64,000 nt of DNA from Octopus sinensis (lineage: Eukaryota): NCBI RefSeq assembly GCF_006345805.1, contig NC_043013.1, forward strand, positions 7,254,001 through 7,318,000, read 5' to 3'. This document shows, piece by piece, positions 59,901 to 62,542 of the stretch; positions within the stretch are counted from its first letter, which is position 1, and every line of letters begins with the position of its first letter. The notes under the pieces were generated by a model that saw only the letters and a list, made by a program, of their open reading frames with translations, was not told where the DNA came from and searched no databases. The position numbers were made by a program, and so were the translations under genes.

Positions 59901-62542
59901 AATAGCTGCTAAATCTCTCTCAAATGACACTTCATTCGCTTAACAAAGATAGGATACATTTGACAATGAAGACTGATATTTAAAAAGAGAGGCTAAACAC
60001 TTAACCTGAGAGAGATACCTCCATAATAGCCTTAGAGTGGAACACAAGAAATCTTTGTATCAAGGAAGCTATATTGATCCACTGCCTCAACCCAAAAATC
60101 AACAGTTGATCAGAGATGGGCCAGTGGCTCCTATGAATACATCATGGCAACCACAACCAACATCATAGCATACACCACCAACACCATCTTTCAACACCAC
60201 CACGTGAACAGAACATCACAATGGCCACAACCAACAGTTGGAGAGTTAACCTAGACACTGAGCAGTTGAAGTAAAATAATGAGATTGATGTAAATACACA
60301 TTTCTTGGACTGCTTCCTGAACTCACTAAGTAACTTGCAAGACAAGACCCCACTCCACTCTGACTGGGCAGCAGGTGGATAACATATGAGAGTGAATATA
60401 TAATTGTTATATGAAAAACAGTGTTTAAGAGAGAAAAATGTGTCAGAAATAAAAGAGTTAGTTATGATTTATTATTAACGTTGTAATATCACCAAAGACT
60501 GGGTCTGTTGATATATTTACATAACATTCATGGAACATAAATGAAGTTATTTCTTCTACAAACCTTTCTTGGATACATTTGAAGTTTCTAGAAGCATAAA
60601 AGGGATTGTTTTCTGTCAGAATATAAGGATATTATGCTTGACACATATCAACTGTCTCGACTGATTGAAAAACAAATAAGTGTGTGTGTGTGTTTGTGTG
60701 TATATATATATATATATATGCATATGTATATGTATGTAATTTATGTATGCGTGATTATATATATATATATATACACATACATATATATATATATATATGC
60801 CGGTGGCACATAAGATCCACCAGCCGATCGTGGTCAATGCCTGCTCCTCTGGCCCCCGTGCCGGTGGCACATAAAAAGCACCCACTACACTCTCAGAGTG
60901 ATTGGCATTAGGAAGGGCATCCAGCTGTAGAATCTCTTCCAGATGGAGCCTGGTGCAGCCTCCTGGCTTTCCAGACACCAGTCGAACCGTCCAACCCATG
61001 CCAGCATGGTAAACAAACGTTAAACAATGATGATGATGATGATATATACATATATATGAAAGAAAGAAAAGGGAAATAAAGAAAGCTTGTAACAAAACAC
61101 AAAGTTTTACAAAAAAAAAAAAAAACTTTATATTTTAAAATATAAAGTTTTTTTTTTTTTTTTGTAAAACTTTGTGTTTTGTTACAAGCTTTCTTTATTT
61201 CCCTTTTCTTTCTTTCATATATATGTATATATCATCATCATCATCATTGTTTAACGTTGTTTACCATGCTGGCATGGGTTGGACGGTTCGACTGGTGTCT
61301 GGAAAGCCAGGAGGCTGCACCAGGCTCCATCTGGAAGAGATTCTACAGCTGGATGCCCTTCCTAATGCCAATCACTCTGAGAGTGTAGTGGGTGCTTTTT
61401 ATGTGCCACCGGCACGGGGGCCAGAGGAGCAGGCATTGACCACGATCGGCTGGTGGATCTTATGTGCACCGGCATATATATATATATATATGTATGTGTA
61501 TATATATATATATATAATCACGCATACATAAATTACATACATATACATATGCATATATATATATATATATACACACAAACACACACACACACTTATTTGT
61601 TTTTCAATCAGTCGAGACAGTTGATATGTGTCAAGCATAATATCTTTATATTCTGACAGAAAACAATCCCTTTTATGCTTCTAGAAACTTCAAATGTATC
61701 CAAGAAAGGTTTGTAGAAGAAATAACTTCATTTATGTTCCATGAATGTTATGTAAATATATCAACAGACCCAGTCTTTGGTGATATTACAACGTTAATGA
61801 TAAATCATAACTAACTCTATTATTTCTGACACATTTTCCTCTCTTAAACACTGTTTTTCATATAACAATTATATATTCACTCTCATGTATTACTCACCTG
61901 CTGCCCAGTCAGAGTGGAGTGGGGTCTTGTCTTGCAAGTTACTTAGTGAGTTCACTAGTGTCAATGCCATGGAAGAAAGTACCCACTGCACTCTGTAAAA
62001 TGGTTGGTGTTTGGAAAAATATTCTTCCGGCCATAGAAACCATGCCAAAGGAGATACTGTACCTCAGAGCAGCCTTCTGGCTTGGATCCTGGTGTGAAAT
62101 GATGATGGTGGTGGTGGTGGTGGCGGTGGTGATGATGATGGTGGTAATGGTGACGATGCTATTGATTATGATGGTGATTGTGTCTATGCACTAATGTCAA
62201 ACCTGTTTATAGTATGCATATTTTGACGGTTCATTCCGTCATTATCATGTTGATTTCTAATTCTTCTCAAATCTAAGTTGTCATCTTTACCTCTTCATTG
62301 CCTTTGTTTTGTTTTTTCTTTTCCTTTTTCCTCAAACAGACAATCGAAACCATGAAGCAGTTAATAGAACGGACCCAGCCGCCTCCGTTTTACCGCCTCT
62401 CTAACTGTAAAGATGGACACTTAGTGAGTGATGTCACAGACAAGGAGAAGATGAATGGAAATTATAAAACCAATATCCCACTGGTAAAGGGCATGCTGCA
62501 TACAAAGAGACACAATACCAATGAGGATTTGTCAGCAGAAAG
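2912..62542 (+). CDS. fry: Protein furry homolog (FRY/FRYL family), internal part of a multi-exon gene; 26 exons in window, both ends outside
   Basis: Spliced translation gives furry motifs in order: [157 protein letters not shown]. All introns are GT-AG and exon phases chain without frameshift. Confidence 0.97.
3361..3578 (+). mobile_element. tRNA-derived SINE family B
   Basis: Same sequence (gagttcaaattc...gactttgcctttcatcc...gggcaataaag) recurs at about 10713-10945(-), 18916-19075, 20956-21540, 23185-23385(-), 36520-36710(-), 41236-41445, 45235-45800(-), 63205-63356. Confidence 0.85.
4441..4947. repeat. Compound (CA)/(CT) microsatellite
   Basis: Direct inspection. Confidence 0.95.
5304..5582. 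repeat. (TCA/TCG)n microsatellite, about 93 triplets, tail of a minus-strand retroposon at about 5583-5770
   Basis: Abuts ...ggctggatgcccttcctgtcaccaacc... retroposon sequence. Confidence 0.9.
6045..6150. repeat. (TCA)n(CTT)n(CCT)n microsatellite upstream of exon B
   Basis: Direct inspection. Confidence 0.95.
6266..6389 (+). CDS. fry: fry exon B ([41 protein letters not shown])
   Basis: actag acceptor, AAG|gtaata donor; 124 nt; not in the ORF track in this frame. Confidence 0.93.
6407..6828 (-). mobile_element. tRNA-derived SINE family A, near full length, antisense, about 20 bp from the exon B donor
   Basis: Reverse complement of the copy at 21961-22394; B-box GGTTCATTCC; internal CA/TA tract. 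Confidence 0.88.
7321..7729 (+). mobile_element. SINE family A, near full length
   Basis: Aligns by eye with 21961-22394 and 52981-53404. Confidence 0.88.
8240..8625. repeat. (TA)/(TATG)/(CATA) compound microsatellite
   Basis: Direct inspection; source of the Y/I-rich ORFs. Confidence 0.95.
11444..11808 (+). mobile_element. Non-autonomous Helitron/Helentron-like element (Lep1-like layout)
   Basis: Starts actagcagtatcgcccggcgttgctcggg; ends with caagtttcatcagaatcgg...acagacagacaaac...tttatatagagagagat, resembling the Lep1 layout from memory. Confidence 0.6.
13810..13947 (+). CDS. fry: fry exon C ([46 protein letters not shown])
   Basis: ttacag acceptor, gtaagt donor; 138 nt. Confidence 0.95.
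14194..14292 (+). CDS. fry: fry exon D ([33 protein letters not shown])
   Basis: tatag acceptor, gtaact donor; 99 nt; matches the FRY VKNEVNVP motif. Confidence 0.93.
14837..15319. mobile_element. Tc1/mariner superfamily (Tc2-like) MITE, copy 1
   Basis: TIRs ctgtaaatcctcgagtata and tatactcgagaatttacgg followed by TA; second copy at 54016-54536. Confidence 0.8.
15584..15741 (+). CDS. fry: fry exon E ([22 protein letters not shown]...[17 protein letters not shown])
   Basis: ttttag acceptor, gtaagt donor; 158 nt. Confidence 0.94.
16022..16290 (+). mobile_element. tRNA-headed SINE with internal (AAT)n and a hammerhead-like 3' module
   Basis: A-box-like tagtggttaag, B-box-like gtttgattcc; CTGAAGA...GAAA at 16189-16220. 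Confidence 0.65.
16599..16755 (+). CDS. fry: fry exon F ([52 protein letters not shown])
   Basis: tttcag acceptor, AAG|gtaaat donor; 157 nt. Confidence 0.95.
17970..18124. mobile_element. hAT MITE, 155 bp, with a perfect 8-bp TSD
   Basis: TIRs caggagtggactaag and ctcagtccacccctg; CTGCATTT at 17962-17969 and 18125-18132. Confidence 0.9.
18665..18745 (+). CDS. fry: fry exon G ([27 protein letters not shown])
   Basis: ccgcag acceptor, GAG|gtgagt donor; 81 nt. Confidence 0.95.
19075..20830. repeat. TG-rich satellite: degenerate monomer of about 23 bp in higher-order units of about 296 bp
   Basis: Marker ggtgagtgaaggtcttatc at 19246, 19542, 19815, 19862, 20155, 20451. Confidence 0.92.
21961..22394 (+). 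mobile_element. SINE family A, full length
   Basis: tRNA-like head (ggttcggtccc), CORE-like caccttggacaagtgtctt, central TA/TG tract, aagagtaaaagag tail. Other copies at about 4100-4260(-), 10490-10650, 12950-13110, 33760-33920, 39400-39785, 50040-50430, 52981-53404. Confidence 0.9.
23637..24600 (-). mobile_element. RTE 3'UTR copy with an internal 193-bp tandem expansion (about 4 units)
   Basis: Near-identical blocks at 193-bp spacing (ORFs at 24007, 24200, 24393); (CAT)n tail at 23637-23663. Confidence 0.9.
24724..25028 (+). CDS. fry: fry exon H ([26 protein letters not shown]...NKEAEEIL)
   Basis: ttgcag acceptor, gtaagg donor; 305 nt. Confidence 0.95.
25063..25340. repeat. 16-bp pyrimidine-rich minisatellite TGACTCCTCTGTCT(C/G)T, about 17 copies
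   Basis: Direct inspection; starts about 35 nt after the exon H donor. Confidence 0.95.
26252..26392 (+). CDS. fry: fry exon I ([46 protein letters not shown])
   Basis: ttgcag acceptor; weak donor GG|gtttgt; 141 nt. Confidence 0.92.
26703..26991 (-). mobile_element. tRNA-derived SINE family C
   Basis: Minus-strand head tggccttgtggttagagc ... gggttcgaatctc (A and B boxes) followed by a non-tRNA body. Confidence 0.8.
27165..27400 (-). mobile_element. tRNA-derived SINE family D (second copy at 62725-62975)
   Basis: Head ggctcagtggttagggtgttggactc...gtttcgattcc; both copies share gagcaaaacacttcatttca. Confidence 0.8.
28421..28488 (+). CDS. fry: fry exon J ([22 protein letters not shown])
   Basis: ctccag acceptor, gtaaat donor; 68 nt; phase links exons I and K. 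Confidence 0.88.
31201..31340 (+). CDS. fry: fry exon K ([46 protein letters not shown])
   Basis: ttctag acceptor, AAG|gtagga donor; 140 nt. Confidence 0.9.
31831..32022 (+). CDS. fry: fry exon L (NLQTT...[32 protein letters not shown]...AQAE)
   Basis: ttttag acceptor, GAG|gtgagt donor; 192 nt. Confidence 0.93.
33955..35060 (+). mobile_element. 5'-truncated RTE-clade LINE: RT C-terminus, complete modular 3'UTR and (GAT)n tail
   Basis: [28 protein letters not shown] and DRDLW motifs in an open frame; stop at 34353. Confidence 0.92.
35062..35315 (+). mobile_element. 5'-truncated SINE family E (second copy at about 58280-58555)
   Basis: cactttatttcac...ccagttcactcagc...ccataaacaaccttgcc shared by both copies. 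Confidence 0.75.
36897..36986 (+). CDS. fry: fry exon M ([30 protein letters not shown])
   Basis: ttacag acceptor, AAG|gtaaat donor; 90 nt. Confidence 0.87.
37018..37191. mobile_element. Small foldback/MITE-like element with inverted arms of about 48 bp
   Basis: 37018-37068 is the reverse complement of 37144-37191 with 1 mismatch and a 3-nt indel. Confidence 0.75.
37404..37696 (+). CDS. fry: fry exon N ([14 protein letters not shown]...DPWVKCL...[25 protein letters not shown])
   Basis: ggcag acceptor, AG|gtgagt donor; 293 nt. Confidence 0.93.
38180..38955. mobile_element. hAT/Charlie-like MITE hosting a nested mariner
   Basis: Ends caggggttctcaac and gttgagaattgctg; partial TSD gtaca; related partial copy at about 58004-58110. 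Confidence 0.65.
38283..38835 (-). mobile_element. Internally deleted mariner element with both TIRs and TA TSD
   Basis: TIRs of about 29 bp (ttgggttgtccagaaagttcgtgccgatt versus aatcggcacgaactttccggacaatcaaa), TA on both sides; ORF joins N-terminal [13 protein letters not shown] to C-terminal [16 protein letters not shown]. Confidence 0.92.
39043..39204 (+). CDS. fry: fry exon O ([53 protein letters not shown])
   Basis: ttgtag acceptor, AG|gtaaaa donor; 162 nt. Confidence 0.87.
40254..40928. mobile_element. hAT-like non-autonomous element with a nested RTE 3' end (40318-40560); second copy at 53447-53842
   Basis: Both copies begin cagg(a/g)ccagatt...ccctaagcactt and share an AT-rich body and 3' end. 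Confidence 0.7.
40943..41200 (+). CDS. fry: fry exon P (Asn-rich linker, then [32 protein letters not shown])
   Basis: aacag acceptor, gtaaga donor; 258 nt. Confidence 0.9.
41435..41965. repeat. (ATT)n microsatellite, about 530 bp
   Basis: Direct inspection. Confidence 0.96.
42854..43003 (+). CDS. fry: fry exon Q ([42 protein letters not shown]...)
   Basis: tcatag acceptor, gtaaat donor; 150 nt. Confidence 0.92.
45821..46330 (+). mobile_element. Helentron-associated (HINE/DINE-1-like) element
   Basis: 5' acctctgccaagg resembles the 3' hairpin arm; 3' hairpin tccgcctt-cgct-aaggcgga; internal duplications; lies in AAT tracts. Confidence 0.65.
48339..48511 (+). CDS. fry: fry exon R ([57 protein letters not shown])
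   Basis: ttgtag acceptor, gtaagt donor; 173 nt. Confidence 0.92.
49850..49958 (+). CDS. fry: fry exon S ([35 protein letters not shown])
   Basis: ttctag acceptor, gtgagt donor; 109 nt; phase links exons R and T. Confidence 0.88.
51244..51403 (+). CDS. fry: fry exon T (...[40 protein letters not shown])
   Basis: ctgtag acceptor, CAG|gtaaaa donor; 160 nt. Confidence 0.93.
52344..52713. repeat. (GTA)n and (ATT)n microsatellites ending at the exon U acceptor
   Basis: Direct inspection. Confidence 0.95.
52718..52872 (+). CDS. fry: fry exon U ([51 protein letters not shown])
   Basis: attacag acceptor abutting (ATT)n, AG|gtatct donor; 155 nt. Confidence 0.92.
54016..54536. mobile_element. Tc2-like MITE, copy 2
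   Basis: TA then ctgtaaatcttcgagtata ... tatactcgaagatttacgg; homologous to 14837-15319. Confidence 0.8.
54615..54898 (+). CDS. fry: fry exon V ([12 protein letters not shown]...[14 protein letters not shown])
   Basis: tcacag acceptor, gtaagt donor; 284 nt. Confidence 0.94.
55706..55962 (+). CDS. fry: fry exon W ([31 protein letters not shown]...[21 protein letters not shown])
   Basis: tttcag acceptor, AAG|gtaagg donor; 257 nt. Confidence 0.94.
56520..56730 (+). mobile_element. Second RTE-like (BovB-like) LINE C-terminal remnant with (TGGT)n tail
   Basis: Frame reads [11 protein letters not shown]...ASDR, resembling the RTE motif GRPRxRWxD. Confidence 0.5.
57577..57705. repeat. (ATCT)n microsatellite upstream of exon X
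   Basis: Direct inspection. Confidence 0.95.
57759..57893 (+). CDS. fry: fry exon X ([45 protein letters not shown])
   Basis: tttcag acceptor, gtatgt donor; 135 nt. Confidence 0.93.
59765..59839 (+). CDS. fry: fry exon Y ([25 protein letters not shown])
   Basis: ctgtag acceptor, CAG|gtaaat donor; 75 nt. Confidence 0.9.
60318..61954. repeat. Spacerless near-perfect palindrome, arms of 819 and 818 bp, centre between 61136 and 61137
   Basis: Base-by-base reverse-complement comparison: 8 substitutions and 3 single-base indels. Confidence 0.96.
62340..62542 (+). CDS. fry: fry exon Z ([22 protein letters not shown]...DLSAE)
   Basis: long pyrimidine tract then aaacag acceptor, AG|gtaaat donor; 203 nt; PPFYR motif. 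Confidence 0.9.

Follow-up and report, generated by a model that had tools for sequence, protein, structure and literature searches.

The window analysed here, i.e., 64,000 nucleotides of Octopus sinensis DNA (assembly GCF_006345805.1, contig NC_043013.1, positions 7,254,001 to 7,318,000 of the forward strand; all positions below count from its first letter), carries a spacerless palindrome of 1,637 bp inside an intron of a homologue of the Furry gene. We consider it more likely than not that this palindrome arose very recently by interstitial fold-back (inverted tandem) duplication of an 818-bp intron segment, i.e., as a neutral or slightly harmful structural mutation and not as an evolved element. 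With a shade more confidence, we think it probable that the structure is real, having formed in the animal rather than as an artefact.

A repeat search, together with a gapped alignment in which the left arm was compared with the reverse-complemented right arm, returned an inverted pair at 60318-61136 (819 nt) and 61137-61954 (818 nt) with a spacer of 0 nt, which reproduces the limits and the lack of a loop proposed in the initial annotation of this stretch. The repeat search resolved the pair into three abutting inverted blocks, 60318-60805/61467-61954 at 98% identity, and 60806-61016/61257-61467 and 61016-61125/61149-61258, both at 100%. Aligned to itself, the palindrome gives 98.66% identity over 1,640 aligned columns, and it is the top-scoring self-match among those of >=90% identity in the window. 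Similarity between the arms is lost abruptly at 60317/60318 and at 61954/61955. The symmetry centre, 61136/61137, lies within an almost pure A/T stretch (61111-61163) that reads A15-CTTTATATTTT/AAAATATAAAG-T16, with TATATTTT/AAAATATA immediately around the centre; the central ~55 bp are nearly all A/T, and the G+C content across 60001-62000 is 0.362.

Each arm is a mosaic of ~340 bp of sequence unique in the window, ~140 bp of (GT)n/(TA)n microsatellite, one short interspersed element (SINE) with an (ATG)n tail, and an A-rich stretch that runs to the centre. Read along the + strand, the left arm begins with the reverse complement of the first 27-37 nt of a second retroposon, the boundary SINE (60318-60351), continues as unique intron sequence to ~60659, and then passes through the microsatellite (~60660-60800), a SINE copy on the + strand (60798 to ~61077) whose tail is (ATG)5, and a final A-rich segment that includes A15 (61111-61125). 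The right arm holds its copy of the arm SINE on the - strand (61233-61474), and runs unbroken into the right flank. The arm SINE belongs to an abundant family with ~20 copies in the window that are 70-84% alike. Since the two arms are ~99% alike, a chance match is excluded, and the arms represent one duplication of a resident segment rather than two insertions.

The two outer ends of the palindrome differ in what lies beyond them. The boundary SINE-like retroposon (61928-62098, + strand) straddles 61954/61955 and is followed by a (TGG/TGA)n tail that Tandem Repeats Finder traced to ~62180. A profile hidden Markov model (HMM) of the SINE was built from 21 window copies with the boundary copy left out, and nhmmer with this profile gave a continuous alignment over 61932-62084, across 61954/61955, at E=2e-19. 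In addition, blastn found three other SINE copies in the window that span the equivalent of this point, at 32926-33011, 44995-45074 and 27483-27451. The left arm, by contrast, ends 27-37 bp into the boundary SINE and there adjoins flank A (59841-60317, + strand), the left part of the intron, which is not SINE and is unique in the window (no matches by blastn at word size 7 or with the SINE HMM). Because the SINE is continuous across the right end while the left arm cuts it off against unique DNA, this comparison supports a polarity in which the donor is the resident right arm and the copy is the left arm. The initial annotation had arrived at the same polarity, with an ancestral right arm and a fold-back left arm, and the homology that it had noted between the right-arm end and the segments at about 32930-33150 and 27451-27477 was recovered by blastn and by alignment.

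The continuity at the right end also bears on whether the palindrome could be a foldback-type or MITE-like (miniature inverted-repeat) transposable element with very long terminal inverted repeats that inserted into the intron. Its palindromic form and sharp ends would suit such an element, as would the presence of a 163-bp palindromic element elsewhere in the window. However, there is no target-site duplication, the flanks reading ctgcttcc and ctagtgtc; outside the palindrome, blastn found the unique segment of the arms nowhere in the window; and the arms are composed of host intron, microsatellites and an ordinary SINE. Decisive is the right end, which lies within a SINE that runs on uninterrupted into the flank, so that the right arm is resident sequence and not an insertion. 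We regard a transposable element as hardly credible, and as effectively refuted by the missing target-site duplication and the continuity of the right end with the flanking SINE. An older palindrome extending past the arms was likewise ruled out: when flank A was locally aligned, with shuffles, to the reverse-complemented right flank (flank C), only a CAC/CAT-rich low-complexity match (score 21) emerged, and the SINE HMM detected no SINE in flank A. Read in reverse complement, the (TGG/TGA)n SINE tail at 62100-62180 is similar to the CAC/CAT-rich stretch of flank A (60139-60205, 21-bp period), and the two lie about equally far from the palindrome on opposite sides; beside the stretch in flank A, no SINE body could be detected.

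The product has the order A - rc(B) - B - C, i.e., flank A, the reverse complement of the donor segment B, then B itself and flank C; its centre has no spacer, and its outer junction is blunt. A fold-back repair event could generate this order. The starting lesion would be a double-strand break or a collapsed fork where the right arm now starts, in A/T-rich DNA between long A/T homopolymers, and 5' resection would expose a 3' tail. By folding back at a short natural palindrome (TTTTAAAA or longer), this tail would prime ~0.8 kb of synthesis along its own strand before being released and end-joined, without microhomology, to the other broken end in flank A. No microhomology was found at 60317/60318. 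A natural short palindrome at the centre (TTTTAAAA or longer) is indistinguishable from duplicated sequence without the ancestral allele. For inverted duplications, fold-back priming at natural inverted repeats of 3-15 bp after resection, with fill-in by Pol delta, is an established route in yeast (PMC10622511). The fold-back inversions known from yeast (sae2/mre11) and human (inv-dup) resemble the present structure in having adjacent inverted copies of which one is continuous with the ancestral flank, in the putative short A/T-rich palindrome at the centre, and in an arm length within the range of resection tracts (PMC10622511). They differ in their outcome, in that they give hairpin-capped or dicentric chromosomes with chromosome-scale duplication and terminal deletion, and usually have a spacer of a few nt to kb, whereas the event described here would be interstitial and 0.8 kb in size, with a second, blunt junction and zero spacer.

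The differences between the arms carry information on the age of the duplication. Gapped alignment gave eight substitutions (60378, 60379, 60383, 60385, 60434, 60453, 60473 and 60627) and three one-base indels, i.e., a G at 60805 and an A at 61015 that only the left arm has, and a run of T16 (61148-61163) facing one of A15 (61111-61125); the list is identical to that of the initial annotation. All of the substitutions but the single outlier at 60627 lie in a patch of 96 bp (60378-60473) with 7.3% local divergence and identical sequence on either side, a clustering with P ~1e-4 under uniform placement. The outermost 60 bp (60318-60377) are identical between the arms, and so is the microsatellite of ~140 bp. 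The inner 509 bp have no substitution, as had been observed for an inner ~500 bp; the probability of this is P = 4e-4 if the eight substitutions are independent and 8e-3 if they are counted as five events. The earlier suggestion of homogenisation near the centre describes the pattern poorly, because the divergence forms a discrete 96-bp patch instead of a gradient and the outermost 60 bp are identical. Taken together, the differences speak for a duplication of very recent date with a single separate patch of divergence.

The composition of the substitutions is informative as well. Transitions account for seven of the eight, as biological mutations or polymorphisms would give, which supports a real duplication. 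With the right arm as source, the eight changes comprise 2 A>G, 1 T>C, 2 G>A, 2 C>T and 1 T>A; they are not biased towards A>G or T>C, and this rules out that the copy was made from an edited RNA transcript. A short template switch was considered for the cluster of four substitutions at 60378-60385 and rejected, as no nearby reverse-complement source was found for either variant (best 10/16 matches). The 96-bp patch suggests either low-fidelity repair synthesis near the junction or an allelic (haplotype) patch. The former is suggested because break-induced and template-switch synthesis is error-prone near junctions, according to a passage in one study that cites Carvalho 2013 (PMC4352052). The latter could reflect real gene conversion or a haplotype switch in the consensus of the right arm, the only one with an allelic partner.

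A possible though, in our view, doubtful alternative is that the palindrome is an assembly or sequencing artefact, in which a fold-back long read (template followed by its complement, or a missed adapter) extended the end of a contig to rc(B)-B-C, and scaffolding or gap closing later abutted this end to a contig ending in flank A. The left arm would then be nonexistent in the animal, and the differences between the arms would be haplotype differences or unpolished consensus errors. Several observations speak for an artefact and to that extent weigh against a duplication formed in the animal. A spacerless centre, identical microsatellites and one-base homopolymer indels are also expected of a technical fold-back, and all three indels are of this kind, which is typical of long-read consensus error. 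The ~1% divergence between the arms (eight differences in 818 bp) is within the range of allelic heterozygosity, and would fit haplotype differences. Fold-back artefact reads make up ~0.55-0.6% of genomic reads from Oxford Nanopore Technologies (ONT) sequencing, often have no intervening sequence, and recur at the same sites (PMC12870357). Their spacerless palindromic junctions occur preferentially at homopolymer A (PMC12870357); in the present palindrome, the centre has A15 on one side and T16 on the other. Perfect palindromes of this length are, moreover, expected to be unstable in vivo (PMC7999016).

Further points count against our preferred reading. The blunt outer junction is no positive signature of any particular repair pathway, and the pathway of formation proposed above is deduced from the end product alone. 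Measured against the SINE profile, each of the two SINE-internal indels is a 1-bp loss from the right arm, i.e., from the supposed donor (GGTGGCAC to GGTGCAC, and AAACAAACG to AAACAACG), while the left arm keeps the consensus length; if the right arm is the donor, these deletions must therefore be either mutations that followed the duplication or consensus errors in the donor arm. Lastly, the case for the structure draws on the internal logic of one assembly and on the literature.

Other features of the locus are difficult to reconcile with an artefact. The palindrome is internal, with unique, ordered intron sequence on both flanks that leads to in-frame exons, and there are 0 N bases in the whole 64-kb window. 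A single fold-back read is symmetric about its midpoint and has no second junction (PMC12870357); it would give C'-B'-B-C and never the A-B' junction found at 60317/60318, where the 818-bp arm is joined to unrelated unique sequence. This second junction is therefore beyond the reach of one such read, and an artefact requires two coincident errors, a fold-back at a contig end and a gapless join. In addition, the two indels that can be polarised sit in the well-supported donor arm and not in the supposedly low-coverage copy, and the patch with seven substitutions is free of indels and rich in transitions, unlike raw long-read error. No other near-identical local duplication of this type occurs in the window.

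The uneven spacing of the differences raises a further explanation, namely that the palindrome is an older inverted repeat held near-identical by arm-to-arm gene conversion, as happens in sex-chromosome palindromes, or kept because its hairpin is useful: it could act as an ADAR sponge, serve as a platform for editing, give rise to small RNAs, or aid splicing by reducing the effective intron length from 2,499 to ~860 nt. The strongly non-uniform differences, with none in the inner 509 bp, would be expected from conversion of this kind, and the window has a second, older short palindrome at 9710-9872. A splice-site motif is also relevant here. A perfect 5' splice-site consensus, CAG/GTGAGT, is present in the right arm when read in reverse complement (61892-61900, antisense), and the duplication would have put it on the sense strand at 60372-60380. 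At this place the left arm has CAGGTGGAT, because 60378 and 60379, two of the eight substitutions, fall at +4 and +5 and break the motif on the sense copy. Perfect matches to MAGGTRAGT number 0 on the + strand and 2 on the - strand of the window. In an older repeat, the 96-bp patch would be shielded from conversion because a converted patch would again have a perfect cryptic donor in the sense orientation.

The broken donor could be due to chance (p ~0.05, post hoc) or could hint at selection against a cryptic donor, and its post hoc nature counts against reading it as evidence of age. Neither a conversion gradient running outward from the centre nor simple age predicts that the outermost 60 bp are identical. 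Long-lived palindromes normally gain central asymmetry, but here there is no spacer, and the microsatellites are identical in both arms. A comparison with Rfam found no homology to known RNA families at the gathering threshold, the best score being 47 bits against a required 100, and the sub-threshold matches were generic hairpin or microsatellite look-alikes. We therefore judge an older repeat to be improbable. Slightly more improbable still is the specific form in which a real, persisting palindrome has its inner part kept identical by intramolecular (hairpin or cruciform) repair while the patch is held divergent by selection against a recreated CAG/GTGAGT, a perfect cryptic donor in an essential gene. 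Nothing indicates a selected function, and a very young fold-back duplication remains our preferred reading.

The palindrome lies in a Furry (FRY/MOR2/PAG1) homologue on the + strand. Joined candidate exons from ~13.7-26.4 kb matched the Pfam domain MOR2-PAG1_N at E=1.1e-73, and joined candidate exons from 54.6-62.5 kb matched MOR2-PAG1_mid at E=1.6e-5; with just the three exons nearest the palindrome, the latter match had E=0.0076. Exon Y (59765-59840, + strand, 75 nt, phase 0), which is part of the MOR2-PAG1_mid match of the joined exons, ends in the donor CAG/gtaaat. Exon Z (62340-62543, + strand, 204 nt, phase 0) is preceded by the acceptor cctcaaacag and ends in the donor AAG/gtaaat. The intron between them (59841-62339) is 2,499 nt long; the palindrome starts 477 nt past the splice donor and ends 385 nt short of the acceptor. 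A search of the PDB with the exons gave no meaningful match, and a protein search with the joined Furry exons found none in a collection apparently without octopus sequences. An exact look-up of a 159-aa open reading frame in the left arm returned no record, and metagenome scans with a 24-mer of the arm and a 26-mer of exon Z gave 0 matches.

At the RNA level, folding of the central 1,500 nt predicted one continuous stem of -1323 kcal/mol. The pre-mRNA would thus form a near-perfect hairpin of ~800 bp that loops out two-thirds of the intron and brings the effective distance between the splice sites to ~860 nt. This agrees with the ~800-bp hairpin foreseen in the initial annotation, whose further statement that the palindrome fills about two-thirds of a 2.5-kb intron between exons Y and Z is borne out by a share of 65.5% with canonical splice sites on both sides. 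The predicted stem is long, near-perfect intramolecular double-stranded RNA (dsRNA), as ADAR substrates are, and lies on the coding strand of a Furry intron that is presumably transcribed. Octopus gave the strongest hyper-editing signal among 19 species surveyed, its share of near-perfect local inverted repeats is exceptionally high (0.44% of random 50-mers), and most hyper-editing is located in near-perfect inverted-repeat structures (PMC5625713). The heavy editing attributed earlier to coleoids is accordingly documented for octopus as an extreme hyper-editor of near-perfect dsRNA (PMC5625713). Given this strong editing within near-perfect inverted repeats, the hairpin, if real and transcribed, is likely to be hyper-edited by ADAR; in a coleoid, it would come close to an ideal substrate for such editing. 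At the DNA level, the palindrome could be a potential cruciform or fragile site. A tRNA search found none.

Other known inverted structures share some of these properties. Human palindromic AT-rich repeats (PATRRs) are likewise near-perfect, essentially spacerless, often intronic and A/T-rich at the centre, with cruciform extrusion and breakage expected (PMC7999016). PATRRs, however, are >90% A+T and ~200-595 bp in total, whereas the present structure is 1,637 bp long, has ~36% G+C over 60001-62000, and consists of SINE, microsatellites and unique intron; assignment to the PATRR class was rejected on this composition. Inverted SINE/Alu pairs and the palindromic Harbinger repeats of Xenopus also provide intronic intramolecular dsRNA for ADAR, and a short loop favours editing (PMC5625713). 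These arise from two independent insertions or from a self-palindromic repeat and give imperfect duplexes of ~200-300 bp, in contrast to the single local duplication with an ~800-bp, ~99% perfect duplex seen here. Hairpin RNA (hpRNA) loci of Drosophila and the inverted duplications of plant proto-miRNA genes are long hairpin RNAs that arise by local inverted duplication. In those cases, a fragment of a target gene was copied and small RNAs are made; here the arms are intron and SINE.

Further repeats occur in the window. The second near-spacerless palindrome (9710-9790/9792-9872) has 81-nt arms that are 91% complementary and a spacer of 1 nt; it is present as a single copy in the window with (TG)n runs on either side, and could be an older fold-back duplication or a MITE. 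At 23866-24587 and 34434-35063 lie a tandem array with a 193-bp period, derived from the 5' part of the SINE (units 97.7% alike), and its partner, which is inverted, 93% identical and ~10 kb away in the same gene region; together they make another potential long-range dsRNA pair. The direct repeat 43201-43437/44018-44254 (~230 bp, 97-98.7% identity, 817 bp spacing) may be a tandem duplication of recent origin or may represent an element's terminal repeats, and a 134-nt inverted pair (43873-44006/44744-44877, 93%) lies near it. Tandem arrays are also present in the introns, at 349-814 (14-bp period), at 19300-20632 (~300-bp units with similar open frames), and at 41450-41965 (short period, with a related block at 52512-52714). 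An open frame of 90 aa at 65-334 on the + strand, containing FFHQDNAQPHAA and PPYLPDIIPSGYHLF, may correspond to the C-terminus of a mariner/Tc1-type transposase; a Pfam search with it returned no match at E<=0.01.

Whether real or artefact, the palindrome adds nothing new on how such structures work, and a hyper-edited hairpin, if true, would be one more member of a known, abundant class. If it is an artefact, it exemplifies a fold-back error hidden in a gene model, of a kind that would inflate counts of near-perfect dsRNA in editing studies. If it is real, it would be an unusually long perfect palindrome for an animal, 1.64 kb without a spacer and ~3x the longest human PATRR; the human genome has just 718 near-perfect spacerless palindromes >200 bp (PMC7999016). 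It would then have been caught essentially at birth, with the donor arm still identifiable, as a natural record of fold-back repair yielding an interstitial inverted duplication. Should selection on the cryptic donor prove true, it would be a case of splicing selection shaping the conversion landscape of a DNA palindrome, with an ~800-bp obligate ADAR substrate in a gene of neuronal morphogenesis in a coleoid. A real palindrome would also lend itself to tests of ADAR hyper-editing, and of how a giant intronic hairpin affects splicing, in an animal that edits its RNA heavily.

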